From the IMG/VR virus record IMGVR_UViG_3300024503_000485, positions 155,445 to 219,444 of that record: a DNA stretch of 64,000 bases; one strand, written 5' to 3'. The translations under genes and the position numbers were made by a program. Under the pieces are notes generated by a model. The model had not been told where the DNA came from. It was given only the letters and a program-made list of their open reading frames with translations, and ran no database searches. Each line of letters begins with the position of its first letter. Position 1 is the first letter of the stretch. Shown in pieces: positions 22,621 through 61,089 of the stretch.

Positions 22621-23824
22621 AAATTCTTGGTGTGTTAATGCGTTCCATGGAATGAGCGCAAATAACAACGGAAGTTCTAAAATGTGTTGTATGATTATTG
22701 AAGAATACAACAGAATGAAAGAATTACAACCAATTTATTTTGTAGACAAAATGTCTATCGAACAAAATTTTAATAATCCTGTAGCAATACAAATTCGAAA
22801 AGATTTAGAAAACGGAATAAGAAATTATGCCTGCAAAAATTGTTGGGAAGAAGAAAATGCTGGACGTAAAAGTAAGCGTCTTCGAGATAATGAAATATAT
22901 TTTAGATCGATAGAAAGGGGAGAAAAACCATTTACCGGTCTTGCTAAGTTTGAATTAAATCTAGGAAATAATTGTAACATAAAGTGTAGAACCTGTGCTC
23001 CTCAGATTAGTTCAACATGGATGAAAGAAGATTACGATCTGCATCATTCAAAAATTTCTTATAAAGAATATGCAGAAATGATGAGAGTGTTTCATCAGAG
23101 CTACGACGACGAAAGTGTTTTCTGGGAAGATTTAAAAAATAATTTAGTCAATATTAGACAATTTGATTTTTATGGCGGCGAACCGTTTTTAAGTAAAAAG
23201 ATGTGGGAAATTCTAAGTATATGTGTTGACAAAGGATATGCTAAAGATATTGAATTGCATTATAATACTAACGGTACAACTTGGCCAGAAGATAAAATTT
23301 CTATGTTTAAACATTTTAAAGGTGTTAATTTATCTTTTAGTATTGACGGTATAGAAGAACAATTTGAATATATGAGATTTCCAGCAAAATGGAATGAAGT
23401 ATTAGAAAATATGAATAAGGCAAAAGAGCTTGCTAATAGTTTAAAAACTCTTAAAATTAGTTGGTGCATTACTTTAAGTACACTGAACATATATGACTTA
23501 CCTAAAACAATAAATTTTTATTACGATCATTTTTCTAGTTTTGGTTTTTATCTAAATTTAGTTCACGGACCCCGACATTATAATATTTCAACTCTCCCAA
23601 CAGATATTAAAGAAAAAATTATTCAACATATTAATGATGTTGTGCCTAAGACGCAGAATCAAGCATGGATGTATCTAGATGGCATTTTAAATTTTATAAA
23701 AAACGGACACTACGAGCCTTCAAGTTTTACTTCTCTAAAGGAAGTAACAAAAAAACACGATCAATATCGAGGACAAGAATTTAATAAAGTTTTTCCTGAC
23801 TATTCAAAAATTATAGGTATGTAA
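22601..23824 (+). CDS. Radical SAM protein with N-terminal Cys-rich domain
   Basis: CNIKCRTC, YGGEP, YNTNGT, SIDG; N-terminal C..MCC..CKNC. Confidence 0.9.
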   Translation: MITETNKNSWCVNAFHGMSANNNGSSKMCCMIIEEYNRMKELQPIYFVDKMSIEQNFNNPVAIQIRKDLENGIRNYACKNCWEEENAGRKSKRLRDNEIYFRSIERGEKPFTGLAKFELNLGNNCNIKCRTCAPQISSTWMKEDYDLHHSKISYKEYAEMMRVFHQSYDDESVFWEDLKNNLVNIRQFDFYGGEPFLSKKMWEILSICVDKGYAKDIELHYNTNGTTWPEDKISMFKHFKGVNLSFSIDGIEEQFEYMRFPAKWNEVLENMNKAKELANSLKTLKISWCITLSTLNIYDLPKTINFYYDHFSSFGFYLNLVHGPRHYNISTLPTDIKEKIIQHINDVVPKTQNQAWMYLDGILNFIKNGHYEPSSFTSLKEVTKKHDQYRGQEFNKVFPDYSKIIGM

Positions 23825-23826
23825 AA

Positions 23827-25092
23827 ATGAGTTTTTGGAATTTTAATGAATTAATACAAGTACATATTGAACTTACAAATCATTGTAATGCTGCTTGTCC
23901 TATGTGCGTAAGATTTTATAATTCTTCAGAGTTAATTAGACCAGATTTAAATTTAAGTCAAATTTCTTTAGAAGATTTTAAAAAATGGTTCCCTCAAGAA
24001 GTATTAGATAGAGTTAAACTTTGGTTATTCTGTGGCGTTCATGGAGATCCGTGTATGGCTAAAGATTTTTATGAAATATGCGAGTACATCATTAATAATA
24101 GTCCTGGGGTCATAGCTGTGCATACAAATGGCGGCATGAGAAATCCTGAATGGTGGGCAAAATTAGGTAATCTTTTTGCAAAAGGAAAAGCATCAAATCA
24201 ATATAGGCTTACTTTTTCCATTGACGGGTTAGAAGATACAAATCACATTTATCGAAGAAACGTTAAATGGGATAAACTTATAGCAAATGCACAAGCATTT
24301 ATTGATGCGGGTGGGAGAGCTCTTTGGGACTTTTTAATTTTTAAACACAACGAGCATCAACTAGATACTGCAAAAAAATTATCTGAGGATATGGGATTTA
24401 CTGAATTTGTTCCTAAAAAAGCATTAGGCGTTGATAATGGAACAGAATTAATATATATGGTAGCTCTTAATAAAGAAGGACAATTAGATTACTATATTGA
24501 AGCTCCTACAAATCCCAAAAATAGAAATTTAGAAAATCCAACAGGAATCCAACCTTTAAAATTTTATCCTTTTTCAAAAGATGATTATAATAAGATGAAA
24601 GAAAATTCAGAATTTAAAAATTCTTATTATAAAAGAACAGAAGAAATTGTTGATATAATAGCAAGTTCTAAATATGACGAACACGACTCGTGTAATATTA
24701 AGTGTAAATCGCATATTGATGATGGGTATAAACGTGGAAAAGAAATTTTTGTCGATAGTGCTGGTAACGTTATGCCTTGTTGTTATATTGGAACACATTT
24801 AAATGGAATTTATTCTGATCCTCCAAGTATGCAACTTGTTCGTAATTTAAATAATTATGGACCAGAAAAACTTAATTTAAATAACCATTCTTTAGAAGAA
24901 ATTTTATCAGCGGAGCATTTAGATAGATTATATGCAGACACATGGGATAAAACAACAAAAGAAGGAAAACTTGTTTATTGTTCTAAAACCTGCGGAACAT
25001 TTTCATCTATAGATAAAATTTTTACACATGAAATTGTTTTAAAAAATAGAAAAAAAAGATATTTAGAATCACAAAAACCAAATGAAAGTTGA
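23827..25092 (+). CDS. Radical SAM protein with C-terminal twitch/SPASM domain
   Basis: CNAACPMC, CGVHGDP, HTNGG, FSIDG; C-terminal IKC..GNVMPCC..CSKTC. Confidence 0.9.
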   Translation: MSFWNFNELIQVHIELTNHCNAACPMCVRFYNSSELIRPDLNLSQISLEDFKKWFPQEVLDRVKLWLFCGVHGDPCMAKDFYEICEYIINNSPGVIAVHTNGGMRNPEWWAKLGNLFAKGKASNQYRLTFSIDGLEDTNHIYRRNVKWDKLIANAQAFIDAGGRALWDFLIFKHNEHQLDTAKKLSEDMGFTEFVPKKALGVDNGTELIYMVALNKEGQLDYYIEAPTNPKNRNLENPTGIQPLKFYPFSKDDYNKMKENSEFKNSYYKRTEEIVDIIASSKYDEHDSCNIKCKSHIDDGYKRGKEIFVDSAGNVMPCCYIGTHLNGIYSDPPSMQLVRNLNNYGPEKLNLNNHSLEEILSAEHLDRLYADTWDKTTKEGKLVYCSKTCGTFSSIDKIFTHEIVLKNRKKRYLESQKPNES

Positions 25093-46158: not shown

Positions 46159-46187
46159 ATTATATAGCCAACAAAAAAGCCAGTCAA
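46159..46187 (-). promoter_or_regulatory. Sigma70 promoter TTGACT-N17-TATAAT (replication operon)
   Basis: -35 at 46182-46187 lies inside the terminator hairpin; -10 at 46159-46164. Confidence 0.75.
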
Positions 46188-46207
46188 CTCAGGACTGGCT
46201 TTTGTTT
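46173..46207 (-). terminator. Rho-independent terminator (potentially bidirectional)
   Basis: AAAAGCCAGTC/GACTGGCTTTT stem, 7-nt loop, T-runs on both strands. Confidence 0.8.
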
Positions 46208-46221
46208 ACCTTTTGGTAAAA

Positions 46222-47019
46222 TTACTTTTGTGCTTCGGATAACACATCATACATTTCAAATACACCGCCCATTCTTTCATATACTAGCCCGGCATATAGA
46301 TCTGCTTTCATTCCTTCACCTAGTTTAGATTTAGCAACACGCTCAGCCCAGGCAAATAATTCTTTGTCTTTTGGATCAATTTGTTGTTGACCGCCGCTTT
46401 CTTGTACTAGTTTTACCATGTCTTTGAAAGATAGTTTTGTTTCAACTGATTCTGCAACTACTTTCTTAGAAGTTTTTACAGATTCGTTTTTCTTACCAAA
46501 GTATTTTGCTTGTTTAGCACTCATACCTTTCTTGCCATCTTTCTTGTCGCCGCCTTTCTTTTTATCTTTAGCAGCTTTCTTCATTGGTTCTTTTTTGTCA
46601 CCGTCACCGTCGATGTCTGCAAAATCTGGCTTACCCTTTGCAGCTTCAACCATCTTACTAAATTTAGACTTGAACTCAGGATCAATAGACTCGTCTTTCT
46701 TTTTCTTATCTTCTTTTTCAGCTTGTTTTCCACTATAGCGATCACCCGCTGTATGTTTCAAACCAGTTTTAGTTTTTTCTGCTGTACCGCCACTAGCTGT
46801 TTTTTTCTTGTCGCCTACTTTAGCATCGGCATCAAAAACTTCATCCATCTTTTCATCAGCTTTTTTCTTAGCTTCTGCAATATATGATGAAGTACCTGCT
46901 AGCACACGTAATTGTGCATCTTCGTTAAGCTGAACAGCTTTTGGTAATTCTGGAGCTTTTGGTAGATCAACTTGATCGTTTAAGCTATGAATTTTAGTAA
47001 GTAATGATTTGAAGTCCAT
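46222..47019 (-). CDS. Lys/Glu-rich prohead core or internal head protein (putative)
   Basis: Many hydrophobic-x-E sites (LNE, IAE, VAE, VQE, LSE); KPDFADIDGDGDKKEPMKKA; GATAAATA at 47058-47065. Confidence 0.55.
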   Translation of the reverse strand: MDFKSLLTKIHSLNDQVDLPKAPELPKAVQLNEDAQLRVLAGTSSYIAEAKKKADEKMDEVFDADAKVGDKKKTASGGTAEKTKTGLKHTAGDRYSGKQAEKEDKKKKDESIDPEFKSKFSKMVEAAKGKPDFADIDGDGDKKEPMKKAAKDKKKGGDKKDGKKGMSAKQAKYFGKKNESVKTSKKVVAESVETKLSFKDMVKLVQESGGQQQIDPKDKELFAWAERVAKSKLGEGMKADLYAGLVYERMGGVFEMYDVLSEAQK

Positions 47020-47060: not shown

Positions 47061-47318
47061 TTATCTTTTTATGGCAGAGCCGCCACCGAAGATATTAGTT
47101 TTCATATCTAGGGCATTTTTAGCTGTACCGTCCTTATTTTTTGCTTGTTTTACTTTAGGAACTGCTGGTGCTTTTGTACCAGATTTGCCTGGGCTACCTG
47201 TGTAGCTTTTATTTCCACGATCTTTTCCTATAGCAATATGAGGGCTAACAACCGTGCCGATATTAGCCGATGATGTTGCTCCTGCTGTAGCTGATTCTAA
47301 AATATCACGTATTTTCAT
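47061..47318 (-). CDS. Small basic internal-head protein candidate
   Basis: N-terminus MKIRDILE-S; AATAAATA at 47326-47333. Confidence 0.55.
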   Translation of the reverse strand: MKIRDILESATAGATSSANIGTVVSPHIAIGKDRGNKSYTGSPGKSGTKAPAVPKVKQAKNKDGTAKNALDMKTNIFGGGSAIKR

Positions 47319-47324
47319 AATATA

Positions 47325-47525
47325 TTATTTATTCTTTCCGCTTTTCATATTTGCACACCAGTGATACATTTTAGATTTCTCACCCGATGCATTTTTTGCA
47401 CGTTTGCGTAGATCAGTAACTGAACCAGAACAACTAGCCCCTGAACGTTTTACTCTTCCGGGGCGGCTTTTTCCTTTAACTTTTCCGTCAGCAAAGTTTT
47501 CTATAACAAACTCTTTAGCTCTCAT
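47325..47525 (-). CDS. Small basic internal-head protein candidate
   Basis: N-terminus MRAKEFVIE-N, resembling the T4 IPIII capsid-targeting leader. Confidence 0.6.
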   Translation of the reverse strand: MRAKEFVIENFADGKVKGKSRPGRVKRSGASCSGSVTDLRKRAKNASGEKSKMYHWCANMKSGKNK

Positions 47526-48691
47526 CTCATTGCTACCTGGAAAGCCTGATGCTTTTCTTTTCTAGAGTCTAAATGTTTAAGCCCGGGATTGATAGTTTTA
47601 GTAACCGCTTTAGTATCTTTAAAACTATCAATTTTTGGTGCTACTCTATTTTTCCAATACCAAACTGCTACTTTAGCAGCAATTTCTGGTTTTTCTACAA
47701 GTTCGGGTTTTTGCTCTAACGGCAATCCTAATGCTTGGCCTGCTTTCTTATAATTGTCTCGACCTGTCAGCTGTATGTATCCGCGACCTTTATATTTTGC
47801 TCCGTCTCCAACATTTTTATTACCCAATGCTTTTGCTTTTTTAGGAGCATATTTAGGATCATATTTTCGAAAGTCTAATGATCCGCCTATTTCTTTCATG
47901 TGTTTAAAATCTAAAGTTTCGTGAGCGCATTGTGCTAAAAACGCTGTAAGCTCGTGACCTACTATACCTGCTTTTTCAGCAGCCTTTTTTAAGTAGACTT
48001 CGTGGGGATTACCGGTTACGCTTTTTGCAATATCTTTTTTAGATACCTGTTGAATAACATCCGGTTTAGAATGTTTAGCATTAGCATCACTAGGAGCACC
48101 GAATGCCATTGCAGTTCCTAGTGCCCCGGCTGCTGCCCAGTCCTTCCATCCCTCGTCAACTTCTCCCTTAGCAGCAGTTTTTAATGCAGAAAAGACTTTA
48201 GATAAACTATCTTCGTCTGCTTGATACTTAATAGCAATACCGCCCGCTTGTTGCCAAGCACGAATGTTTACACCGTAATCGTCAATAAGAATATTAGGAG
48301 TACCGTCAGCATTTTTTGCATATTTGTATTTTTCGTGTTCGAATATAATTTTGTCAGCAGGAACATGAATATGTTTTTTCAGCCATTCACGTTTACCTCT
48401 AATGCTTCCTTCTTTATCAAAGTTTAATGGGCTGCTTAAAATATTATAACCACCTGCATAATCAACTACTATGCTTAAAAGTTTATTAGCAGTAGAAAAT
48501 GCCGGAAGGTCACGAAATAATTCATAGGCATTAGAGTCTTTAAAAAATGTTTCCCATTGATCTTTTGTCATTTTATTGTAGTGCTCTACATCATGTAAAC
48601 CTCCTACATGATTAAAAAGATCAGCAAGGACTCCGTCCATATCAACATAGACTTTCATTCCTTTGGGTAAACTAAACTCTTCTGCTCTCAT
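47522..48691 (-). CDS. Fusion: HAD 5'(3')-nucleotidase (NT5C-like) plus GH19 lysozyme/chitinase
   Basis: VYVDMDGVLAD, ILSSP, K, LIDD; then VDE-GWKDWAAAGALG linker; then FLAQCAHET, YKGRGYIQLTGRDNY, TINPG. Confidence 0.85.
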   Translation of the reverse strand: MRAEEFSLPKGMKVYVDMDGVLADLFNHVGGLHDVEHYNKMTKDQWETFFKDSNAYELFRDLPAFSTANKLLSIVVDYAGGYNILSSPLNFDKEGSIRGKREWLKKHIHVPADKIIFEHEKYKYAKNADGTPNILIDDYGVNIRAWQQAGGIAIKYQADEDSLSKVFSALKTAAKGEVDEGWKDWAAAGALGTAMAFGAPSDANAKHSKPDVIQQVSKKDIAKSVTGNPHEVYLKKAAEKAGIVGHELTAFLAQCAHETLDFKHMKEIGGSLDFRKYDPKYAPKKAKALGNKNVGDGAKYKGRGYIQLTGRDNYKKAGQALGLPLEQKPELVEKPEIAAKVAVWYWKNRVAPKIDSFKDTKAVTKTINPGLKHLDSRKEKHQAFQVAMR

Positions 48692-48762
48692 ACTGGACTA
48701 TATGGATTTAGAGGACGATCCCATTCGCCTTCTTGTGGTGGATAAACAGGATACTCGTTCAT
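48688..48762 (-). CDS. 24-aa Pro/Tyr-rich peptide, not in the ORF track
   Basis: [24 protein letters not shown]; exactly fills the gap with ATGA overlaps at both ends. Confidence 0.6.
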
Positions 48763-49082
48763 ACTGCAAAACTACTTCCACAACCGCAGGTTGTTACTGC
48801 ATTAGGATTTTTGATAGTAAAACTTGATCCCATTAATTCTTCTTTATAATCTATCTCTGCACCGTGTAGATATTGCATACTCATTGCGTCAACTAATACT
48901 TTCCATGCACCGCAATCAAATTCAAAGTCATCTTCGTTTTGTTCGTCGTCAAAGGTAAAGCCGTAACTAAATCCACTACATCCGCCACCTTGTACAAAGG
49001 TACGAAGTTTTAAATTAGGGTTTCCCTCTTCAGAAAGCAAATCTTGAATTTTTATTTTTGCTGATGGTGATATTGTAATCAT
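48759..49082 (-). CDS. erpA: A-type Fe-S cluster carrier (ErpA/IscA/HesB family)
   Basis: [43 protein letters not shown]. Confidence 0.9.
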
Positions 49083-49083
49083 T

Positions 49084-49287
49084 TTATTTTCCTACAGGTT
49101 TTTCTCCGGTTAGATAAGGAAGACTGAACCATAATTGAAACCATTCCGGAGTACCTGGTTTAATATTATGTTGTTTCATAAGTTCGCCTTTTTCGTTTCC
49201 AGTAATACTTATGTTGCTGCCGTCGTAAGGTTGATAACCTTTAAATTCGGTAATACCTGCAAGACGTTTTAGTTCAGATAAATCCAT
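49084..49287 (-). CDS. Small internal-head protein candidate
   Basis: Start [14 protein letters not shown] is coupled by TAATG; [13 protein letters not shown]. Confidence 0.6.
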
Positions 49288-49913
49288 TATGCTGTGGCTG
49301 GTTCGCCTGTACGAGAAACTTCCCATTTCTTGCCAGTCTGTTCAGTTTTCTTACGGCACATGTCTTGCAATCTACGAAGCTGAGCCATTTCTCTGTGATC
49401 GTCTGCGTATGTTCCTTGACCAGGAAACACTTTCCATTTTTTACCGTTGATATAGATAGCAAAGTTATTTGGTGGTTCGGTGTTGCCCTCGTCCCAATCA
49501 TCTTCTCTATTTCTACGTCCAAATCCGCTTACGCTACTATCGTAATCTCTTTGATAAGCATCACGTCCAAAACCTGATTCTTTCATAGGATCCTTTCCTG
49601 CCTGTACTTTTTTATACCATGAAATTAATTCAGCATCACTAGCAAGTTCAAGATAGTTTATTTCCCAGTCCATCTTTTTAGCTAAGAATTGAATAATTTG
49701 TTGTCTTTTAGATCTATCTAATAAACCTTCTGTTACTTCTGCTGGTTTTTTATGTTTTTCATATCCTTGTTTTTGTGCCTTCTTCATATCTTTATGAGCA
49801 CCGGCACCTGAGATAACACTTTGTGCAGCATGAGCTACAGGGTTTCTAGGTTTGACATTATACACTTTTGCTCTTCGGCTTTTCTTATGTTCTAATATAT
49901 CAGATATTTTCAT
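49287..49913 (-). CDS. Modular internal-head protein candidate
   Basis: MKISDILE leader; internal VTE-G and MKE-S junctions separate short modules. Confidence 0.6.
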   Translation of the reverse strand: MKISDILEHKKSRRAKVYNVKPRNPVAHAAQSVISGAGAHKDMKKAQKQGYEKHKKPAEVTEGLLDRSKRQQIIQFLAKKMDWEINYLELASDAELISWYKKVQAGKDPMKESGFGRDAYQRDYDSSVSGFGRRNREDDWDEGNTEPPNNFAIYINGKKWKVFPGQGTYADDHREMAQLRRLQDMCRKKTEQTGKKWEVSRTGEPATA

Positions 49914-52900
49914 GATGATCTCTTTTGTTTAGGACCCTTACGAGTTTTCCATTTTTTATCAGTGGAACACCAATAGCGTCCATATCCTTCTTTTACTTCT
50001 TTCTTTTTAGGATAACCGTGTTTTATTTCTAGTTGATAACCCTGTAATCCTTGTTTATCTAAAACCTTACTAATAAATTCTTCGGCTTCTTTCGCAGAAG
50101 AAAATTTATCACCTAAATTATATTTCCTCATTTCGCCATCGATCATTACATAGGCAATAGTAATAGGTTTGACTGGTTCTTCTGCCGCCTGTGCCGGACT
50201 TGCTAATAAATTAGCAGCAGCTAAAGCTGCGCCTGCCGTTTTACTTTTCCAACCTTCTTCAACGCTATCAATCATTGGATCAATACCGCGACTTCGGATT
50301 CCACCTTTTCTTCTTACTTTAGCAAGTTCTTCTAAGGCATGACGAATTTGTTCTACATTCATTTTAAGTTCGTCAAATTGTTTGGCCATGTTTTGCCATT
50401 CGTATGGACTAGCATTGTCTACTCTGCTAGCAAGATCTTTAATTTGTCCAGCTGCTCTCATCATTCTATATTTTAACTTCGCTGGGTTGGCTTTGTCATG
50501 GCTATGAATCATAGGATTCATTGGTTCGGAAGGATCCATTTCAATCGGTGCTTCAGATATGCTTTCTTGAATACCCATGCCCTTGCGTGTGAAATCCATT
50601 AATTTCATAATCCAATCTTTCCCTAATTTTTGAACATCAAAACCTTGAGACCATAATGCAAATTGCTGTTCTGGAGTAGCATTAGGATCTTTTAAAATGT
50701 TACGTAATTTAGTAAAACTCATTCCAGTTCCGCCAGTTTCGGCAGCTCTTGGTGTAACTTCTACATCAAATTTAACATGTTCAAATCCTGGATATTTAGG
50801 ATTCTTCATCCTTTTAGATAAATGCTCCATCCATTTTTTAAATCCTTCATATCGATCTTCGCCAACCATAACAATGATATGATCGTATGGAGGAGGATTA
50901 CTTGATGTTACTAATTCTTTTTCAATTTTTTTCATAACTAATCCACCTTCTTGGATCAGCTGGAACATGGCCTTCTTTTCTGGATATAATTTTTGCCATG
51001 TTTGTAATTTAACAGAAGCTGGAATAGGATCGTCTGGTCCCACGGCACTACTAATATAAACATAAGGATCAGCATTTAACTGAGACGCTTTGTTTAAAAC
51101 AAAATCTACAAGTTGTTGATGTCCAATGTGCCCAACAAAACTTCCTGCGGTAACGACAGCAGTTTTGCCCGATCTTCCATCGCCTGTTGCTCCAGGAGGT
51201 CTTGCAGATTTAATTGCTGCGTTTTTTGCAGAAATAATATCTTTTTGTTCTTGACTAGTAATTTTAACAGGACCATTCTTTGTGTTAAGAATAATGCCTT
51301 CATAATCTTTGCCTAACTTATCCTTTCCTATAATATCTGGATGTTGGATGATAAATTTTGCTAGATATTCTTTGACAGGCTGCAATGCTTCGGTAGCTTC
51401 TTTTTTAAGATCTCTTTTACCGCTATTAACTAACGATCGTAATGTTTCAAGATTTTCAATGGGAGGCAATGCCCCAGTTACATCTAAACTGCCGTTAGTA
51501 GTTAACGAGTTGTCAATGAACATTGTTGTTCCAATGCGACCAATTTTTCTCAATGCAGAGATGTATTTGTCGCTATTTGGATGTTGTTCGCCAGTTGAGC
51601 TTTTTTCAGCAAACAATGGCACAAGTGCTAGAGTAACACCTTCGGGCAACTTGTCATAATGTATGCCAACAAATTTTAATTTACCATCTTCTGTTTCAGT
51701 AGCAAATGGTAGATATAAAACTTCACAATGAATTTTTACATCATTGAGAGCGGTATTACCTAATTTTTGATCAACGTTAGCAATGACATGCATCATCTCG
51801 TCGTATAGATCATCAAATAACTTAGCCCTAGCTTTTACATCTGGAGCGGCTTGTCTTTCTTCAGCATGTTTGCTGAATGTACCAGGTTCAAACTTAGGAC
51901 CACTACGACTAGTTTCCATATATGGTTTGCCAGATTTATCTTTACCAAACCTAGCACCAAACCCGTCTACTTTAACGGTCATTGGAACATTGTGTAATTC
52001 AAATTTTCCTGTTGCTGAATTTTTTAATTCGTCTAATAAATTTAAAAAATCAGAATCCTTCATTTTTTCTAAATGAACAATTCCTTTTCTTTTACTTTGT
52101 ACTACTTCGGCTTCGTTAATACTTTCGGATACTTTGTAACTTGCTTTATAATCTTGACGCATTTGTTCAAGATTTTTATGAGGTGTAACGTTTAAAGTTT
52201 TTAATGCATAGTTAAGTGCTGTATTTTTTTCTAAGATATCTCTTTCAGGATCGCCTTTATATAATCCTTGTGCGCCAGGAGCATATAGCTTATCAATAAA
52301 TGCATCAATGACTTTTTCCTTTTCATCCTGAGGAACAACAAGATTCATAATTTCTAATAATCCTGTAAAACTCCATGTCTTAGGAAGAAGTTTTTGTATT
52401 TCTGTTTCTTTAACTCTTTTACCAAATATGTTTTGGAAAATTTTTCCAATATTCTTTTCGTAACCACTTGCTGGCAACGCCCTCATAACAGGAAGACCGT
52501 CAATTTCTAAAGGCTGTCCGGCATCGTCTAATACTGGTTCATATTTAGGACGAAGGCCTCCGCCTTCTTTGCTACTAACAGCAAAAGAAAACATATTGTC
52601 TGTTGTTGGAACATCTTGTTCAACTCTAGCTTTACCTCGGCCAACCATTTTTCTTAATAAAAAATCTTGGCTTGTTAATCGTGTAAATGATTGAATTAGA
52701 TACTTGTGAAATACACCTTTGATACCTTGGCTTAAATCTTCCCAGCTACTGCTATGACTAAATCCTGCCCAATCAGTGGGTTCGTCTTTTTCATAATCTA
52801 CAAATTCAAGATCAATCTGTACCTTAATAGGAGGATCAGTTAACTCCCACATTGTACTATATTGTTCGTTGCCTTTACTAAATCCAATTAATTTTCCATT

Positions 52901-53311
52901 GCCAACAACTTTACCTGTTGAGGATTGTAAAAATTGAACAAGTTCTCCTGCATATTCTTTATTAATTTGTGTATCTATATCGCCAACTTTAGGTTTAATA
53001 CGTTCAAACTCGTCGTCGGGTAAGTCAGTATTAAAAAAATGTAAACTAGATCCGCTTAAGAATTTTTTACTTGCTAAAACTTTTTTATTCCAAAGTTCGT
53101 GACCAACTGATGCAGTAAAACTAGAATTAATTCCGTTTAATAATTTGTCTAATATTGGAACAATATAAGAACGCTTGTGAACTTTAAGATCAATTTGCTG
53201 AGCTTGATGGTCACCGGTATCTCCTTGCCAGCCAGGGCTTTGAGTCGAAAGGTTTCCACCTTCTATAAGAGGTAAATTATTTCTCTTGTAGAATAATTCT
53301 AAAAGTTTCAT
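49910..53311 (-). CDS. 1133-aa multidomain protein: Pol-beta-type nucleotidyltransferase, ligase-like KxDG domain, HxGH cytidyltransferase-like domain and small C-terminal modules
   Basis: GSS..GDID..QID; TVKVDG..EGIIL..PVK; GSFVGHIGH; junctions at LIE-G, INE-A, ISE-A, VEE-G, VKE-G. Confidence 0.7.
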   Translation of the reverse strand: MKLLELFYKRNNLPLIEGGNLSTQSPGWQGDTGDHQAQQIDLKVHKRSYIVPILDKLLNGINSSFTASVGHELWNKKVLASKKFLSGSSLHFFNTDLPDDEFERIKPKVGDIDTQINKEYAGELVQFLQSSTGKVVGNGKLIGFSKGNEQYSTMWELTDPPIKVQIDLEFVDYEKDEPTDWAGFSHSSSWEDLSQGIKGVFHKYLIQSFTRLTSQDFLLRKMVGRGKARVEQDVPTTDNMFSFAVSSKEGGGLRPKYEPVLDDAGQPLEIDGLPVMRALPASGYEKNIGKIFQNIFGKRVKETEIQKLLPKTWSFTGLLEIMNLVVPQDEKEKVIDAFIDKLYAPGAQGLYKGDPERDILEKNTALNYALKTLNVTPHKNLEQMRQDYKASYKVSESINEAEVVQSKRKGIVHLEKMKDSDFLNLLDELKNSATGKFELHNVPMTVKVDGFGARFGKDKSGKPYMETSRSGPKFEPGTFSKHAEERQAAPDVKARAKLFDDLYDEMMHVIANVDQKLGNTALNDVKIHCEVLYLPFATETEDGKLKFVGIHYDKLPEGVTLALVPLFAEKSSTGEQHPNSDKYISALRKIGRIGTTMFIDNSLTTNGSLDVTGALPPIENLETLRSLVNSGKRDLKKEATEALQPVKEYLAKFIIQHPDIIGKDKLGKDYEGIILNTKNGPVKITSQEQKDIISAKNAAIKSARPPGATGDGRSGKTAVVTAGSFVGHIGHQQLVDFVLNKASQLNADPYVYISSAVGPDDPIPASVKLQTWQKLYPEKKAMFQLIQEGGLVMKKIEKELVTSSNPPPYDHIIVMVGEDRYEGFKKWMEHLSKRMKNPKYPGFEHVKFDVEVTPRAAETGGTGMSFTKLRNILKDPNATPEQQFALWSQGFDVQKLGKDWIMKLMDFTRKGMGIQESISEAPIEMDPSEPMNPMIHSHDKANPAKLKYRMMRAAGQIKDLASRVDNASPYEWQNMAKQFDELKMNVEQIRHALEELAKVRRKGGIRSRGIDPMIDSVEEGWKSKTAGAALAAANLLASPAQAAEEPVKPITIAYVMIDGEMRKYNLGDKFSSAKEAEEFISKVLDKQGLQGYQLEIKHGYPKKKEVKEGYGRYWCSTDKKWKTRKGPKQKRSS

Positions 53312-54476: not shown

Positions 54477-55163
54477 TTATTTAGCTAAAATTTGATAGTC
54501 GTAAACCCTACCCACAACTTCACCATTTCGCAATTGCATCATGAATAGAGTTTTTTCGTCCTCTACAAGTACGTATCGACGGTCCCAATTATAATCGGTC
54601 TTTATAAACCAACTTTTAACTGCGGTTGACATTCGTATCTTTTCCCCTTGAGTTTCAATCCAAGAAACAAAACTTTCTTTTGCTTCTTTATTTCCTTTTA
54701 ACTTATGGGGAAGAAGATATACTTTGTAGTTATATCTATTATGAGGTAATTTTTTAGCAAAAATCGAATTTGAATTTGTTTGTTCTTGTTCTTGCCCAGG
54801 AAATGGTTCAAATACATGTCTTACATAATCTTTAAATTCTAAAGCAAGATTTTTACAAAATGTAGCATCGTTAGTGTATATGTCGATATATCTACTTTCA
54901 ATTCTTTTAGTAAATTCAACATTTTTATTTTTTTCTAAAAATGTAACTAGTTCTAAGATTTGATCTTTGTTACTAAATGCTTGTTTTCTGCTGTCAAAAT
55001 AATAATGTCGATCTTGTTCTTCTGGGTTTAAACAGAATTCTCTAATCTCATCATATGTTTTTGTGCGTAACAAAGATACCCCCTTGATCAAGACGGTAAC
55101 TTTGTATAACCACTTATTGTAAAACTTTTGACCTGTATACTTTACATCATACGGTTTCTTCAT
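54477..55163 (-). CDS. Hypothetical protein
   Basis: 228-aa ORF, GGAGG RBS. Confidence 0.65.
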   Translation of the reverse strand: MKKPYDVKYTGQKFYNKWLYKVTVLIKGVSLLRTKTYDEIREFCLNPEEQDRHYYFDSRKQAFSNKDQILELVTFLEKNKNVEFTKRIESRYIDIYTNDATFCKNLALEFKDYVRHVFEPFPGQEQEQTNSNSIFAKKLPHNRYNYKVYLLPHKLKGNKEAKESFVSWIETQGEKIRMSTAVKSWFIKTDYNWDRRYVLVEDEKTLFMMQLRNGEVVGRVYDYQILAK

Positions 55164-57459
55164 TGGATTCCTCCAAGTTTAACCCTCGCTTCAATGCCTT
55201 TTTCTGTTCTTTGGTTAAAATAGGACTAATTTCAAATTTTAGATCGTCATTCTCAATGCTAACATCAACTCGTCCGCCGTTTTGTAATTCTCCAAATAGG
55301 ACTTTACGGCTCAAAGGAGATTTGAGTTTATTATCAATTAAACGAGCCAACGGTCTTGCGCCCATCTTTTTATCGTAACCTCTTTCAGCTAACCATTTAA
55401 CTGATTCGGAATCAACAACAATCTCAATGCCTTTATCTTTAAGTTGATCGTTAAGTTCTTTAACAAACTTTTTAACAATTTGACCAACGGTAACCATTGA
55501 AAGATTTGAAAACTTAATAATAGCATCTAAACGATTACGGAACTCCGGAGCAAAGAATTTCTTAACTGCCTTGTCGTCCTCGTCGTCCTTGCTTAAGTCA
55601 CCAAAACCTATGGTATTTTTTTCGTTGTCTGCTGCCCCTAAATTACTGGTCATAATTAAAATAGTGTTGCGACCGTCTGCTTGTTTTCCATTACTTCCAG
55701 TTACAAATCCGTTATCCATAAATTGTAACAAGATGTTTGACACATCGGGATGTGCTTTTTCAATTTCATCTAAAAGCAATACAGCATTTGGGTGTTCTTG
55801 TAGTTTGGTAATCAACTGACCTGCGTTATCTTCGTATCCAACATAACCAGGAGGTGCACCAATTAATCGAGCAACGCTATGTTTTTCTTGATATTCACTC
55901 ATATCAAAACGAATTAATTGCATACCCATTTTATCTGCTAACGCTCTTGCAGTTTCTGTTTTACCTGTACCAGTTGGACCTAAAAATAGAAAACTGCCAA
56001 TGGGTTTATTAGGATTTTTCATACCTGCTTGAGAAACAAAAATCTTATCAAGAAGATTATCAACTGCTGTATCTTGTCCATAAACAGATGCCTTCATGGA
56101 ACCTTCTAGGTCAGATAAGTTCTTACTTTCTTTTTGTGCTACCATTTCTAGCGGCATATTAACCATTTTACTAAGTTCGTATGTAACCTGTTCAATATCT
56201 ACCAGTTGTTCAATGCCTTCCATGCCGTCTTCGTCTTTTACTTTATAACGAGCACAAGCACAATCGATAATGTCAATTGCTTTGTCTGGTAATTTTTTAT
56301 CAGACATATACTTCATAGAAAGTTTAACTGATTGCTCAATTGCACCGTCAGTAATTTTAACGTTGTGATGTTTTTCGTAGTATTTCTTAATACCTTTAAT
56401 AATTTTAACTGCAAGTTCTGGCGTTGGCTCGTCAACCGTAACACGTTGGAATCGACGCATTAGAGCACGATCTTTTTCAAAATGTTTACGATAATCTTCC
56501 CACGTAGTTGATGCTACAAGTTTAATAACACCTTTAGTAAGGATTGGCTTCAACATATTGGCCATATCATTTGAACTTTGATTAGCAGCACCGGCACCTT
56601 GCATCATGTGTGCTTCGTCAATGAATAAAATAATCTTGCCTTTCTTTTCTAAAGCACCTAACACAGCTTTTACACGTTCTTCAAAATCTCCACGATACTT
56701 ACTACCAGCTAGCAATGCTGAAATATCTAAACTATAGACCTGATGGTCTTGAATAAACTTAGGTACTTTCTTTTCAAAGATCTTGCGAGCAAGACCTTCT
56801 ACAATAGCAGTCTTACCGACTCCGGGTTCACCTACCAGTAAAACATTACATTTGTTTCTGCGAGCAAGAACAAGTTGTACCTTTTCAAGCTCGTCGTCTC
56901 TACCAATAACAGGATCAATTTTACGTTGTTTTGCTTGTAGGCTTAGGTTAGTACAAAAAGTATTAATAATTCGTTCCATCTGACTAGGGTTTGTAACTGC
57001 GGTTTCTTGGCTTGATTCTTCTTCATTATTAACCATTTCTTGGAAATAATTAATAAATTTTTCTTTTGTTAAGCCGCCTTTGTTTAAAAAATAAAATGCA
57101 AAACTATTTTTTTCATTTAAGATGCTAACAATAACATCTGCAACTTCAATACGTTGACGCCCACTAAACAAAACTTGAGTAAAACATCTATTGAGCACAC
57201 GTTCTACAGCATGAGTTTTTCTTGGTTTTTCGCATTCTGGATTTTTAATATCGCTAAGATTATTTTTAATATAATGATCTAGATTTGTTTTAATAAAATT
57301 AGCATCAGCACCGAAGTCGGTGATCATCTTAAATGAATCAGCATCATCCATTATACCAAGAAGCAAATGTTCAATGGTAATATATTCGTGATCAAGGCTT
57401 TTTGCCATATTCATCGAATTTTCAAAAATTTGTTGTAGACTTTGACTTGGTTCAATCAT
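55147..57459 (-). CDS. clpA: ClpA-like AAA+ unfoldase
   Basis: Clp N-domain (HEYITIEHLL), DPVIGRDDE, GEPGVGKT, FIDEAH, GPTGTGKT, LLDEIEKAH, IGF loop, GARPL; no ClpB middle domain. Confidence 0.92.
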   Translation of the reverse strand: MIEPSQSLQQIFENSMNMAKSLDHEYITIEHLLLGIMDDADSFKMITDFGADANFIKTNLDHYIKNNLSDIKNPECEKPRKTHAVERVLNRCFTQVLFSGRQRIEVADVIVSILNEKNSFAFYFLNKGGLTKEKFINYFQEMVNNEEESSQETAVTNPSQMERIINTFCTNLSLQAKQRKIDPVIGRDDELEKVQLVLARRNKCNVLLVGEPGVGKTAIVEGLARKIFEKKVPKFIQDHQVYSLDISALLAGSKYRGDFEERVKAVLGALEKKGKIILFIDEAHMMQGAGAANQSSNDMANMLKPILTKGVIKLVASTTWEDYRKHFEKDRALMRRFQRVTVDEPTPELAVKIIKGIKKYYEKHHNVKITDGAIEQSVKLSMKYMSDKKLPDKAIDIIDCACARYKVKDEDGMEGIEQLVDIEQVTYELSKMVNMPLEMVAQKESKNLSDLEGSMKASVYGQDTAVDNLLDKIFVSQAGMKNPNKPIGSFLFLGPTGTGKTETARALADKMGMQLIRFDMSEYQEKHSVARLIGAPPGYVGYEDNAGQLITKLQEHPNAVLLLDEIEKAHPDVSNILLQFMDNGFVTGSNGKQADGRNTILIMTSNLGAADNEKNTIGFGDLSKDDEDDKAVKKFFAPEFRNRLDAIIKFSNLSMVTVGQIVKKFVKELNDQLKDKGIEIVVDSESVKWLAERGYDKKMGARPLARLIDNKLKSPLSRKVLFGELQNGGRVDVSIENDDLKFEISPILTKEQKKALKRGLNLEESNEETV

Positions 57460-58304
57460 TATTCGACTCCGTCTCTTAGTTGTTGTACTTTATGTATTTG
57501 ATTAGCTGATAGGTTACGTGGAATATTGACATTAATTTTAATTAATAACGGCCCACGTATTTTTGAACGCATATTTGGCAAACCTTCTCCTTTGCAACTT
57601 AGTATTGTATTTGATTGTGTTCCTGCTGGAACACTGACACTAATATTTTTTCCTGAGATAGTAGGAACATCTATTGTTGTTCCTAATATAGCATCCCAGA
57701 CAGAAATATTATGTTCAAAGATTAAAGAATCGCCTTCTCTAATAAATGTTGGATGTTTTCGAATATAAAGATTAACAATCAAATCTCCTGCCGGGACATC
57801 TCGTAGGGTTGTGTCGCCCATACCTTCATATCGAATTTGTTGGCCGTGATCTACGCCTGCAGGAATTGAAATATTAATTAATTTTCTTTGCCCGCCGGGT
57901 ATAGTAATTTCAGCATTTAAATCTTTGCCTTTTAAAACTTCTTCTAAGGAAAGTTCTACGTTAATGTTAACAGATCTATTTCTTCGCATTGGCCTACGTC
58001 CAAATCCAAACTGCGAAAAAATATCGTCCATGCCCGGCATGCCGCCACCGAAGTGAAATTCAAATGGGCCTTGGTTGTAAAATCCGCCGCCCATTCCTGG
58101 TTGTGCATTAGGATCTCCGCCCATATCAATAATCCGTTTTTTATCAGGATCGCTTAATGCTTCGTAGGCAGTAGATATTTCTTTAAATTTATTTTGGTCA
58201 CCTCCACGATCGGGATGATGCTTCATCGCAAGTTTGCGATAAGCCTTTTTAATCTCGTCGTCAGATGCACCTCTTTGTAAACCTAGTGTTGAGTAATAAT
58301 CCAT
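57459..58304 (-). CDS. dnaJ: DnaJ-family co-chaperone (class B/CbpA-like, no zinc finger)
   Basis: MDYYSTLG..KKAYRKLAMKHHPDRGG, G/F-rich linker, C-terminal domain; start reassigned to MDYY. Confidence 0.9.
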   Translation of the reverse strand: MDYYSTLGLQRGASDDEIKKAYRKLAMKHHPDRGGDQNKFKEISTAYEALSDPDKKRIIDMGGDPNAQPGMGGGFYNQGPFEFHFGGGMPGMDDIFSQFGFGRRPMRRNRSVNINVELSLEEVLKGKDLNAEITIPGGQRKLINISIPAGVDHGQQIRYEGMGDTTLRDVPAGDLIVNLYIRKHPTFIREGDSLIFEHNISVWDAILGTTIDVPTISGKNISVSVPAGTQSNTILSCKGEGLPNMRSKIRGPLLIKINVNIPRNLSANQIHKVQQLRDGVE

Positions 58305-58310
58305 AATACT

Positions 58311-58339
58311 ATTATACAATAAAAAAAGGACCACGTCAA
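58311..58339 (-). promoter_or_regulatory. Sigma70 promoter TTGACG-N17-TATAAT (dnaJ-clpA; probably leaderless)
   Basis: -35 at 58334-58339 lies in the terminator loop; -10 at 58311-58316; 6 nt to the ATG. Confidence 0.75.
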
Positions 58340-58593: not shown

Positions 58594-59115
58594 TTAAATT
58601 TCTGGTTGATCAGGTTGAACCGGCATTGGTTTACCTGTACTGCTCATCATCGGTGCAGCTGGTGCCCCAAATGTTGCTGGCTTAGATACGCCTCCAAAGC
58701 TGCTTCCGCTAAAGCTACTTGGGGAGCTTGGTGCTCCGAAACCTGGCGTAGTCGCTGCTGGGAAACTGCTTGGTGCTGCCGTAGCAGGGCCAAATGTTGA
58801 AGGGTTACTTGTTGCCATTGGTTGTGCGCCACCATTGTTTGCTCCATTTAGTTTTTCTTGTGTGCGACCAAATGCCGCGATACCTAATACTGCACCCATT
58901 GCGATATGGAATAAACCAGCACCTTGTAAGGTTAATGGATTCCATTGTGTAATAGGACTATGTGTTAGAGTTTGTAACAAACTCCATAAGATTGGAAATA
59001 CAACCATGTCCATCATGCAGACAACCATATACATCCAACCCATCATTGGACGCCATTTAGCATTCATCCAATCTTCTTTTTTCTTTTCACTTTCGCTCTT
59101 TACTTCTTCAGTCAT
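58594..59115 (-). CDS. Holin-like membrane protein
   Basis: WRPMMGWMY, two hydrophobic helices, FGRTQEK, Pro/Ser-rich tail; in the lysis cassette. Confidence 0.6.
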   Translation of the reverse strand: MTEEVKSESEKKKEDWMNAKWRPMMGWMYMVVCMMDMVVFPILWSLLQTLTHSPITQWNPLTLQGAGLFHIAMGAVLGIAAFGRTQEKLNGANNGGAQPMATSNPSTFGPATAAPSSFPAATTPGFGAPSSPSSFSGSSFGGVSKPATFGAPAAPMMSSTGKPMPVQPDQPEI

Positions 59116-59134
59116 TGTCCGCTCCTAATTTATT

Positions 59135-59698
59135 TTAGAACCAAAGGAATAAACCATTTAGGCTCAATAATACTCCGGCGCCCGCTACTACAAAGCTGCC
59201 CCAGAACATTGCCATGCTAACTGCAAGAATACTTGCAGATAATACAACAATAGCTAATTGATACGCTGTTGAAGCATAACCAATCCATGGGCTAGACTTT
59301 TTAGCAATTTCACGCTCGTGTTCCATGGCCTTTGCTTTAACAGCAAGTTCTTTCTTGTCTTCATCCATGCGTTCTTTTTCAGCCATGAACGCTGCTTTAA
59401 GTTTTGGATCAGCGGTTGTCTTAGCGGCAATCTCGTAGCTAACTCCACGACCTGCTTTGGCTTGATATTGTGCCCATGTATTGTTAGCACCTAGTGTATT
59501 GTTTAATACCGTGCTAGATAATTTGCCACTATACCATGCGTTAACCGCTAATAATAATGCAAATACAGAAATAACCATACCTGCTTTGTCTTTTAGTTTT
59601 GCTTCACGCTCGCTGCGTGATCCCACTGGAGGCTTTGGTGCGTCCGGATCTTTGGGTTGCTTGTTAACTAAATTTAACACTGAATCAATTAATGCCAT
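59135..59698 (-). CDS. DUF4337-like membrane protein
   Basis: TM helix, NNTWAQYQAK, coiled coil, QLAIVVLSA and a further TM. Confidence 0.6.
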   Translation of the reverse strand: MALIDSVLNLVNKQPKDPDAPKPPVGSRSEREAKLKDKAGMVISVFALLLAVNAWYSGKLSSTVLNNTLGANNTWAQYQAKAGRGVSYEIAAKTTADPKLKAAFMAEKERMDEDKKELAVKAKAMEHEREIAKKSSPWIGYASTAYQLAIVVLSASILAVSMAMFWGSFVVAGAGVLLSLNGLFLWF

Positions 59699-59722
59699 TC
59701 ATCGCTCCTTTAAATACTAACT

Positions 59723-59989
59723 TTATTTAAGTGTTTCCCAAATTTTTTGTTGCCCTTTGTACCATGAAATCCAATTATCAACCTGTGCTTTGCAATCGTA
59801 ATATTCCTTGTAGTTGTCTGCTACAACTTCAACAATGGCGCTAAGTTTGTCATTTTTAGGATCTACGGTTTTTAGATCGGGACAAGCTTCTAATAATTCT
59901 TTAGGAACCTCGGGCCATTTAGGAATTACAGGAGCAGTTGAACATCCTGCTAATAAAGTTACTGCTAATAAAAGTGCTAATTTTTTCAT
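59723..59989 (-). CDS. Outer-membrane spanin (lipoprotein)
   Basis: Lipobox LLAG-C, Pro-rich, CPDL..NY..YYDC; overlaps the i-spanin gene. Confidence 0.8.
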   Translation of the reverse strand: MKKLALLLAVTLLAGCSTAPVIPKWPEVPKELLEACPDLKTVDPKNDKLSAIVEVVADNYKEYYDCKAQVDNWISWYKGQQKIWETLK

Positions 59990-60450
59990 TTTTTAGCCTC
60001 TGGATTAGTTGCAGCTTTATTAACTAACTCGTTTACTCGAGGGTCTATTTTGCATTCTGCATTGATAATTTTTTCAACTTCTTGAATTTGTGTTTTAACC
60101 GTATTGTAGTATTCAACACGAACTTTTTGTTTCTTTTTCTTTTCTTCACTTAATTGTTTATTAAGGTCTGAACTAGCACGTTCTGCCTGTGCAACTTTAT
60201 CTTCTGCTTCTTTTACCTTAGCTCTCCATTCTGCTTCAGTATCGTAGCCACCTTTAAAATAAACCCCAGCAACTAATAATACAACACTGACAATTTGTAA
60301 AAGTAAATGATACGGTGCTAGTGCAGGGAACCAACGTACAATTCTATGTAATAAAAAGAAACTTAAAAATGTACCAATGGCACCTGCTAGTAATACTAGG
60401 TGTACAGCATAAATTAGTACAGCATCCGGTACCCACGCTAGCATCCACAT
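59986..60450 (-). CDS. Inner-membrane spanin
   Basis: N-terminal TM helices, coiled coil, C-terminal Cys; between endolysin and lipoprotein. Confidence 0.75.
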   Translation of the reverse strand: MWMLAWVPDAVLIYAVHLVLLAGAIGTFLSFFLLHRIVRWFPALAPYHLLLQIVSVVLLVAGVYFKGGYDTEAEWRAKVKEAEDKVAQAERASSDLNKQLSEEKKKKQKVRVEYYNTVKTQIQEVEKIINAECKIDPRVNELVNKAATNPEAKK

Positions 60451-60453
60451 AAG

Positions 60454-61089
60454 TTATGCTCCAAAAACGTGTAATGCGTGATTATAATGTTTGATACGAT
60501 CTTCTAAACCAATAGTACCACCGTTGATACGCTTGGTTAATGTTAGGATGTCACCTTTGTCTGCCCATTGATTTAGGTTGTTTGTTTCCCAGAACCAGCA
60601 AGCTGATTGCACAGCACCTTCGAATGTCTGTAGGTATTCTGCCGCTTCCTCTACAGGAATATCTAAACTGGCAGCAAACCAGGTATAATTTTCTTTACCT
60701 GTTAATTGAATTAGTCCGCGACCGCAGTAACGATAACCGTCGCCAGAGTCTTCTGGACCGTTACCCATACGATTTGCATAAATGCGATTTGCTATAGCTT
60801 CTTGCTTGTTAGGTAAACTAGCATAGTGATTAGCTGTTGCATCGTCTGTAAAATACTTAGGAAAAATCTTACGTAGACTAGGTGCTTTATAATTTAAGTT
60901 TTCTTTTAATACACGAAATCCACCTGATTCGTGTGCGCATTGTGCCATAAAAGCTGCTACACGTTGGGGGGTGTTAATTTCATAATCTGGTAAAATTTCA
61001 TTTAATGCTTCGTACCAATGATCAATATATGGATTACCTTTGATGATATCTGCTACTTGATCTCTAGTAAAGTTAAATGTGAAGCTCAT
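60454..61089 (-). CDS. Endolysin, glycoside hydrolase family 19
   Basis: AAFMAQCAHESGGF..ENLNY..YANRMGNG..GRGLIQLTGKENY..TKRINGG. Confidence 0.92.
   Translation of the reverse strand: MSFTFNFTRDQVADIIKGNPYIDHWYEALNEILPDYEINTPQRVAAFMAQCAHESGGFRVLKENLNYKAPSLRKIFPKYFTDDATANHYASLPNKQEAIANRIYANRMGNGPEDSGDGYRYCGRGLIQLTGKENYTWFAASLDIPVEEAAEYLQTFEGAVQSACWFWETNNLNQWADKGDILTLTKRINGGTIGLEDRIKHYNHALHVFGA

Follow-up and report, generated by a model that had tools for sequence, protein, structure and literature searches.

The prohead proteases of T4, phiKZ and SPN3US cut C-terminal to glutamate (PMC5694885), and the capsid-targeting sequence (CTS) of T4 reads MKTYQEFIAE (PMC8442874). In Salmonella phage SPN3US, the ejection protein gp47 loses a propeptide to the prohead protease at A-x-E sites, and its mature N-terminus is a predicted transmembrane helix (TMH) thought to meet the host membrane (PMC5694885). 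Here we describe a locus in which maturation of this kind may be coupled to protein export. It lies in a 64,000-nucleotide stretch of viral DNA (the window; IMG/VR record IMGVR_UViG_3300024503_000485, positions 155,445 to 219,444), the last 64 kb of a 219-kb contig from a genome of 36% GC. Two proteins encoded there carry in mid-chain a short module, in which a putative glutamate-specific cleavage site is followed directly by a segment resembling a Sec signal peptide.

The proteins studied here share several properties with substrates of the T4 CTS/gp21 system. They begin with a propeptide-like sequence of about 10 residues of the form M-basic-x-x-E-F/L-I/V-x-E (the N-termini of T4 gp24 and gp22 also resemble MRAxEF[IV]xE), T4 cleavage falls C-terminal to Glu after a hydrophobic P3 residue as at the sites described below, and the T4 CTS proteins are likewise otherwise unrelated, have only the tag in common and are clustered in a variable locus. 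T4 cargo, however, has no export signal, whereas here a strictly conserved GWK and a putative signal peptide are joined directly to the putative cut site, and several unrelated domains stand under one tag in the manner of a polyprotein; targeting and cleavage are in our case putative. The initial annotation of the locus had held that nothing similar was described for phage cargo, a statement that needs qualifying, gp47 being a partial precedent (PMC5694885). That protein differs in being a single protein of a phiKZ-like phage for which there is a TMH prediction only, and in having no AxA site, conserved junction motif, wall-hydrolase cargo or cytoplasmic-enzyme fusion, all of which are seen here.

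More distant parallels exist. Secreted and signal-anchor-release (SAR) endolysins, such as P1 Lyz and Lys44 of Oenococcus phage fOg44, are muralytic enzymes with a Sec-dependent N-terminal signal, and SAR domains are Gly/Ala-rich. Their signals stand at the true N-terminus and serve lysis, whereas the signal described here is always masked, is encoded apart from a separate holin-type cassette and also precedes non-lytic cargo. At the flavivirus capsid-prM junction an internal signal is cleaved on its cytosolic side by a viral protease and at its other end by host signal peptidase. This too is a polyprotein with internal export signals, but in a eukaryotic RNA virus, processed co-translationally at the endoplasmic reticulum and with no sequence relation to our module. 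In bacteria, the Bradyrhizobium FbcH cytochrome b/c1 precursor is a fusion protein that is divided at a signal peptide within the chain; it is of cellular origin, its signal follows transmembrane helices and no protease site lies upstream. CTS-type tags, Glu-specific maturation, Sec and Tat (twin-arginine translocation) signals and GH19 enzymes are all known parts. In the literature we found no description of a conserved junction coupling a cut to a cleavable export signal, of its spread, or of a cytoplasmic/periplasmic polyprotein fusion; full-text searches for peptide strings (EGWKDW, MRAHEF and others) and searches combining internal signal peptides with phages and polyproteins returned nothing relevant.

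Translation confirmed that both segments lie in frame and mid-protein at the positions first reported (Table 1), and they are not a chance observation; GW[KR] occurs only at these two places in the 64-kb window (stop-to-stop frames of more than 80 codons, all six frames). Segment 1, in a 389-aa fusion, comprises GWK, a 14-residue Ala/Gly core and P..ANA, with ...GEVDE ahead of it; segment 2, near the end of a 1133-aa protein, comprises GWKSK, a 13-residue Ala/Leu core and SPAQA. The Sec-like core, the Pro and the AxA end that had been noted are thus present at both, as uncharged cores of 13–14 residues and as ANA and AQA, each with Pro ahead. These features fall within what is expected of Sec signals, namely a hydrophobic core of about 7–15 residues and small residues at −3/−1 with a helix breaker ahead, and the Tat motif RRxFLK is absent from both sites. 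The 'basic start' of the first description holds as a single Lys and for GWKSK, which has a net charge of +2, but not for GWKDW, where the net charge is 0. That no Met lies directly ahead is correct for site 1 (codons gtt gac gag gga tgg), which has no in-frame ATG, GTG or TTG nearby; at site 2 an in-frame ATG does lie seven codons upstream (PMIDSVEE), but nothing resembling a Shine-Dalgarno sequence is suitably spaced from it, and relatives lack the Met.

The two host proteins had been called unrelated, which is true of their domains, while their N-terminal tag style and gene cluster are shared. In the 389-aa protein, Pfam places an NT5C domain at residues 14–156 and a GH19 domain at residues 246–354. 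The latter is a clear GH19 member (PF00182, 49 bits against a cut-off of 25.5; PHROG endolysin, 6e-42) and is 30% identical to the other, signal-less GH19 of the same phage. An AlphaFold2 model shows two confident domains joined by residues 177–212, which are unstructured with a predicted local distance difference test score (pLDDT) below 50, and the module lies within that linker. The fusion recurs as identical or 80%-identical copies on many independent contigs. The 91-aa cargo that ends the 1133-aa protein consists of a strand-strand-helix-strand domain of about 55 aa, then VKE↓G (49996-49988; ↓ marks a putative cut) and a basic tail; its AlphaFold2 model has a mean pLDDT of 69, and a fold search with it gave no significant match in the PDB. 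Both junctions are colinear, with no joints or indels, in metatranscriptome (RNA-library) and DNA contigs from river samples. A co-occurring strain in an RNA-library contig (run X15), compared over window positions 50185-50270, preserves module 2; it has Val in place of Thr in the n/h-region and Ser in place of Ala at position +1 past AQA, and its remaining changes are synonymous.

On sequence grounds both segments are instances of a single conserved module, with the plan: acidic stretch, hydrophobic residue, D/E, E↓G-W-K, Ala/Gly core of 12–14 residues, AxA. A scan of IMG/VR with the 389-aa protein as query gave 78 loci, in which E-G-W-K-D-[WIVA], the Ala/Gly core and AxA are kept ahead of GH19 while the part upstream varies by phage: NT5C, HAD phosphatase-like, Gly/Tyr-rich or basic segments, or a leader of only 12–13 residues. 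The module precedes cargos other than GH19 too. A search for the motif across phage proteins, which the initial annotation had proposed, shows it to be general: a 34-column profile found the module in 174 protein clusters (E<=1e-3, 1.84 billion representative proteins), at almost any position along proteins of 73–1646 aa, and 40 distinct modules, when aligned, show no variation at E, G, W and K. Synonymous positions differ between the DNA of the two window copies, and 49 DNA versions of the module use all four Gly codons, both Glu codons and both Lys codons. Codon choice at module positions is therefore free, and it is the peptide that is under selection rather than any DNA repeat; a repeat or mobile element acting at the DNA level was rejected since synonymous sites differ. 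Other searches added little. GenBank phage sequences gave no match to the region by megablast, and none by tblastn to the module alone, the C-terminal 129 aa or a DUF7230-module protein, and no cultured relative is available; a word-index protein search restricted to the module returned three matches, and a protein atlas query confirmed GH19 and nothing further.

The anatomy of the module was counted over 147 copies. P3 is V, L, I, M or F in 146 of these, 82% have D or E at P2, and Glu stands at P1 throughout; the filter required EGW[KR], although the Glu is also invariant in the 40-module alignment. The ten residues ahead of the junction have a mean net charge of about −3 and are net negative in 91%. 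After G-W-K there is mostly D or S and then the 12–14-residue Ala/Gly-rich core; A-x-A is present in 120/147 at a distance from the Gly of mostly 23–25 residues, and the six residues past it are neutral on average. The size and layout of the module are those of a Gram-negative Sec signal peptide. Lipoprotein signals were rejected as there is no Cys, as were prepilin-type and double-glycine leaders, whose motifs are wrong. The module also departs from SAR domains, its Gly/Ala core being never N-terminal, 12–14 residues long and followed by the conserved AxA.

None of 141 representatives examined has the module at its N-terminus, and the leaders of full-length proteins run down to 10 aa and no shorter. 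In 25 'minimal' proteins there is nothing but an acidic leader (10–25 aa, charge −1 to −5, ending h-x-E, where h is hydrophobic), the module and the cargo. As encoded, there is therefore no net positive n-region at a protein N-terminus, the module standing within the chain or after a leader whose charge is −1 to −5; GWK with a free amino group would provide a positive start only after the putative cut. From an internal or net-negative leader position a poor Sec substrate is expected, and the acidic stretch before the Glu should disfavour export unless it is removed.

The recognisable domains on the two sides of the module are split, with cytoplasmic types upstream and cell-wall enzymes downstream. 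Among 139 downstream segments, Pfam recognised GH19 (32), LysM (7), Phage_lysozyme (3) and a few DUFs, and PHROG matches were to endolysin or transglycosylase. The 109 upstream segments matched DUF7230, cytidylyltransferase (CTP transferase), GNAT, sigma-70 region 4, dCMP deaminase and NT5C in Pfam and PHROG, and no wall-acting domain was found among them; two match PHROGs named 'virion structural protein', which is a hint only. This tabulation, also proposed at the outset with periplasm-acting enzymes expected downstream, bears out that expectation overwhelmingly for the recognisable domains.

Several observations suggest that the carriers are processed as polyproteins. Seven representatives carry two modules. 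Two proteins, P0026 (residues ~858-890, L169:9445) and P0142 (residues ~940-970), have an internal Tat-type signal, RRGFLK followed by a core and AxA, that stands directly after IEE or VDE, and both also carry GWK modules; in P0026 it precedes the same small domain that follows segment 2 in the window. One chain cannot use several such signals, so that a cut upstream of each would be needed. Sites of the form h-x-E↓G/A with no signal are also enriched at domain junctions: there are 55 copies of GV[AST]E[GA] where 0.8 would be expected and about 105 of [VIL]xEG with no following W where about 48 would be, while control sites with K, D or Q at P1 are at expectation. The pieces of the 1133-aa protein, which has further h-x-E sites between its domains, are three separate genes in Stenotrophomonas and Xanthomonas (T4-like) phages, and shorter architectures of it occur in relatives. 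A 265-aa Lys/Glu/Asp-rich protein with six h-x-E↓A/S/G sites is possibly another protease substrate; searches including PHROG and NCBIfam gave it no family match, and NCBIfam assigned no names.

Most carriers begin with a tag of about 10 residues, M-[RK]-A-x-E-F-[IV]-x-E. The strict pattern is present in 66/141 representatives, and [LIVFM]xE falls within the first 16 residues in 107/141, ending most often at residue 9; the tags thus have the form of propeptides of 10–20 aa that end hydrophobic-x-Glu. In the window five adjacent minus-strand genes (47061-53311) carry such a tag and no other gene does. Among them, the DUF7230 protein has a VTE↓G site and no signal where its relatives have a full GWK module, and a homologue of the 66-aa basic protein is the N-terminal partner of a module–GH19 fusion in other phages. 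Tags resembling those of T4 point to a prohead protease and to cargo that is packaged in the capsid and injected. The P3 hydrophobic residue and P1 Glu fit the C-terminal-to-Glu specificity of the T4, phiKZ and SPN3US prohead proteases.

Table 1. Features of the tagged cluster, the putative processing sites and the lysis cassette in the window (↓, putative cut).
Feature	Position	Strand	Basis or remark
389-aa fusion: tag, NT5C nucleotidase domain, masked-signal module, GH19 muramidase domain	47522..48691	-	open reading frame translation and Pfam
Tag MRAEEF of 389-aa protein	48674..48691	-	
V-D-E (V178-D179-E180), putative protease site, probable cut after E180	48152..48160	-	
Signal-peptide-like segment 1, GWKDWAAAGALGTAMAFGAPSDANA, G181-A205, 25 aa	48077..48151	-	
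Putative exported part: linker and GH19 catalytic domain	47525..48076	-	Pfam and PHROG endolysin
1133-aa polyprotein-like fusion	49910..53311	-	PHROG matches 15-384, 429-571, 713-919 (cytidyltransferase)
Tag MKLLELF...PLIE of 1133-aa protein, ending L-I-E↓G	53261..53311	-	
VSE↓S and INE↓A, h-x-E sites between first two domains of 1133-aa protein	52112..52132	-	PHROG boundaries 384, 429
IQE↓S and ISE↓A, h-x-E sites just past cytidyltransferase-like domain	50552..50572	-	
V-E-E (V1017-E1018-E1019), putative protease site, probable cut after E1019	50255..50263	-	
Signal-peptide-like segment 2, GWKSKTAGAALAAANLLASPAQA, 23 aa	50186..50254	-	kept in relatives
91-aa C-terminal cargo of 1133-aa protein	49913..50185	-	alignment
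208-aa DUF7230 protein, tag MKISDILE, VTE↓G site (49736-49728), no signal	49287..49913	-	
66-aa basic protein, tag MRAKEFVIE	47325..47525	-	
85-aa protein, tag MKIRDILE↓S	47061..47318	-	
265-aa Lys/Glu/Asp-rich protein, six h-x-E↓A/S/G sites (e.g. YIAE↓A)	46222..47019	-	
211-aa GH19 with no signal	60454-61089	-	lysis cassette
154-aa protein, N-terminal transmembrane segments and coiled coil	59986-60450	-	lysis cassette
88-aa LysC-like gene			called in relatives; lysis cassette
DUF4337 membrane protein	59135-59698	-	
GTA (gene transfer agent)-type holin with three transmembrane segments	58594-59115	-	

The account that we tentatively favour is that a lineage of aquatic T4-like jumbo phages may use copies of the module as a 'masked export signal', a Glu-specific protease unmasking a Sec signal. 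The precursor would consist of a tag of about 10 aa, optional cytoplasmic-type domains, an acidic stretch ending hydrophobic-D/E-Glu, a GWK-headed Sec-type signal with Ala/Gly core and AxA, and a cell-wall-acting or uncharacterised cargo. As made, with its signal internal or behind a net-negative leader, it would stay in the cytoplasm. A Glu-specific phage protease would then cut at h-D/E-E↓G, parting the fused domains and leaving GWK as the start of a normal signal peptide of 23–25 residues; the most likely enzyme would be a prohead protease of the T4 gp21 type acting on tagged proteins inside the prohead. The freed cargo would be exported by the host Sec system (Tat in some relatives) and trimmed by signal peptidase I at AxA and, were the cut made in the capsid, export would follow in the next infected cell. 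The interpretation offered in the initial annotation, that cleavage after the Glu would unmask an N-terminal signal and route the released domain to the membrane or periplasm, is to this extent partly supported.

A more specific form of this account, which we consider doubtful, is that pre-secretory proteins are packaged: a tagged polyprotein would be cut at its h-x-E sites in the capsid, and the Sec or Tat system of the next host would export the cargos. The signals would in that case be exposed only in the capsid, where export machinery is absent, and the proteins once fused to the cargos, among them the nucleotidase and the sigma factor, would carry out their roles in the cytoplasm of the next host.

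A number of points weigh against the favoured account. No protease gene was found in the window or in the reachable contigs of the phage, whose head genes lie elsewhere, and the tagged locus looks early rather than late, although sigma-70-like matches occur there at chance frequency; for want of a protease and because the locus looks early, the prohead protease and packaging step is the least certain. There is no obvious benefit in delivering a wall hydrolase to a freshly infected cell. What is known of the specificity of T4-type proteases gives no reason for the invariance of the Trp and Lys that follow the cut. A freshwater GH19 subgroup has Lys-rich residues right after AxA (e.g. AKKKP), and a Lys-rich start after the signal peptide hinders Sec export in E. 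coli. Finally, the RNA-library coverage may include carried-over DNA.

The alternative that survives best, though still unlikely, does away with the Glu cut: the module would be an internal signal peptide or anchor, with host signal peptidase alone splitting the chain after AxA or a membrane tether remaining. The domains ahead of it would remain in the cytoplasm and the one behind it would pass through Sec. The domain asymmetry fits the N-in, C-out topology that this would require, AxA is conserved, and bacterial fusions split by internal signal peptides, of which FbcH is an example, do exist. It fails to explain the invariant E-G and the hydrophobic P3, however, and the strongly acidic N-side flank contradicts the positive-inside rule. 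A core of 12–14 Ala/Gly residues has neither the length nor the hydrophobicity that a stable anchor needs, two Sec-like modules and a Tat-type signal cannot all work in one chain, and the cargo-only forms keep an acidic leader of 10–25 aa ending h-x-E.

We think it distinctly improbable that a protease distinct from the prohead enzyme makes the cut after Glu, in the cytoplasm of the producing cell, which would give timed export of wall enzymes and further periplasmic factors in that same cell and no packaging. No candidate protease is seen in the window for this role, the N-terminal tags resemble the prohead-targeting propeptides of T4, and a lysis cassette of holin, endolysin and spanin-like genes is already present. 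Against these stand the location of the genes, in a replication-type neighbourhood behind a sigma-70-like promoter match and adjoined in conserved synteny by clpA/B-like and dnaJ-like chaperone genes, and the fact that all of the evidence for cutting applies equally to a cut made there.

That the cut occurs in the capsid but frees a membrane-inserting anchor, fixing ejected proteins to the host inner membrane, has gp47 of SPN3US as a precedent, for which anchoring was speculated. The Gly/Ala-rich core with its small-xxx-small spacing would suit such a role, and the Lys-rich stretch past AxA in the GH19 subgroup suits an anchor better than a Sec substrate. We nevertheless judge it quite improbable: AxA stands at a constant 23–25 residues with Pro or Gly ahead of it, the core has only 12–14 residues, and relatives have unmistakable Tat-type signals at the same position and before the same cargo domain.

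It is very improbable that the segments are flexible Ala/Gly-rich interdomain linkers, alike by chance or through shared ancestry with no targeting role. AlphaFold2 does model the segment as unstructured, but four residues are invariant and the module recurs in 174 clusters while synonymous sites vary freely, the AxA spacing is fixed, the domains differ sharply on either side, and the module is never N-terminal. The idea that the downstream parts are separate internally started genes or are separated at the RNA level, the internal position being an annotation artefact, is barely tenable: the ATG at site 2 is all that speaks for it, whereas site 1 lacks a start codon, relatives do not keep the Met of site 2, P3 to P1 upstream of the junction are conserved as amino acids, the upstream frames stay open for up to 1019 codons despite 36% GC, and RNA-library and DNA contigs run through with no joints or indels.

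If the masked-signal account is right, the phage would hold back cell-wall enzymes within the cell, and only the action of a protease would release their export signal, a route so far undescribed; DNA phages would use true polyproteins with internal, protease-gated export signals, which to our knowledge are so far known only from eukaryotic viruses. It would explain the fusion of unrelated enzymes in these genomes and provide a sequence rule for periplasm-bound phage proteins (acidic leader, h-D/E-E↓GWK, Ala/Gly core, AxA), under which hundreds of uncharacterised cargo domains would become candidate periplasmic factors for host takeover or exclusion. Were the packaged form of the account true, the export route would be protease-gated over two cells, and polyproteins would be a general strategy in DNA phages. 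The junction is short, strictly conserved and easily mutated, so that direct testing is feasible.

The wider genome places this freshwater phage among large T4 relatives. Its DNA polymerase is 44–51% identical to those of jumbo T4-superfamily phages (Phosso, Atu_ph07, ~350-kb Escherichia phages), and T4-type baseplate genes (baseplate-wedge and gp10-type) are present. Walking leftward from the window ended at a 4561-aa gene, and rightward led through replication genes to a gp10-like baseplate gene. Searches based on the major capsid protein returned a different, ~160-kb T4-like lineage, in whose head loci no module was found; a T4-like contig with a 70%-identical NT5C carries gp21, gp22 and gp23. 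The tagged genes are flanked by clpB/dnaJ-like genes on one side and the DNA polymerase on the other, and a sigma-70-like consensus match (58339-58311) lies upstream of them. Of the T4 late-promoter octamer TATAAATA the window has a single copy where shuffles predict 9.4, a marked depletion, and the motif therefore gives no information on timing. The lysis cassette, at ~58.6–61.1 kb (58594-61089, minus strand), is separate and conventional. Since this cassette already contains a GH19 with no signal, the tagged GH19 is an additional enzyme.

Directly upstream of the tagged cluster are genes for a ClpA/B-like double-AAA chaperone (770 aa) and a full DnaJ homologue (291 aa; together 55147-58334, minus strand), which could be involved in handling the precursors. 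A marine relative (L169) keeps the slot, with a polyprotein between a clpB-like gene and the DNA polymerase, and the chaperone synteny is retained. Amid the tagged cluster lie an untagged IscA-type Fe-S assembly gene (Fe-S_biosyn, 1e-19) and an 80-aa open reading frame (48759-49082, minus strand), and at the end of the cluster a strong bidirectional terminator-like hairpin (46159-46203) overlaps a TTGACT-17-TATAAT promoter-like site. One strain has an extra 265-aa gene of Beta-lactamase2/Peptidase_S11 type beside its cytidylyltransferase gene (L084:12672-13469, minus strand), which is absent from the otherwise syntenic L083 and L085. The open reading frame at 213-3518, which runs in from the left of window position 1, forms the last part of the 4561-aa gene (L081:1-9990), a gene with faint CBM_5_12 and FG-GAP matches. 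After the tail-fibre block there are four consecutive paralogous radical-SAM-like genes (472, 455, 407 and 421 aa; 19835-25092, plus strand).

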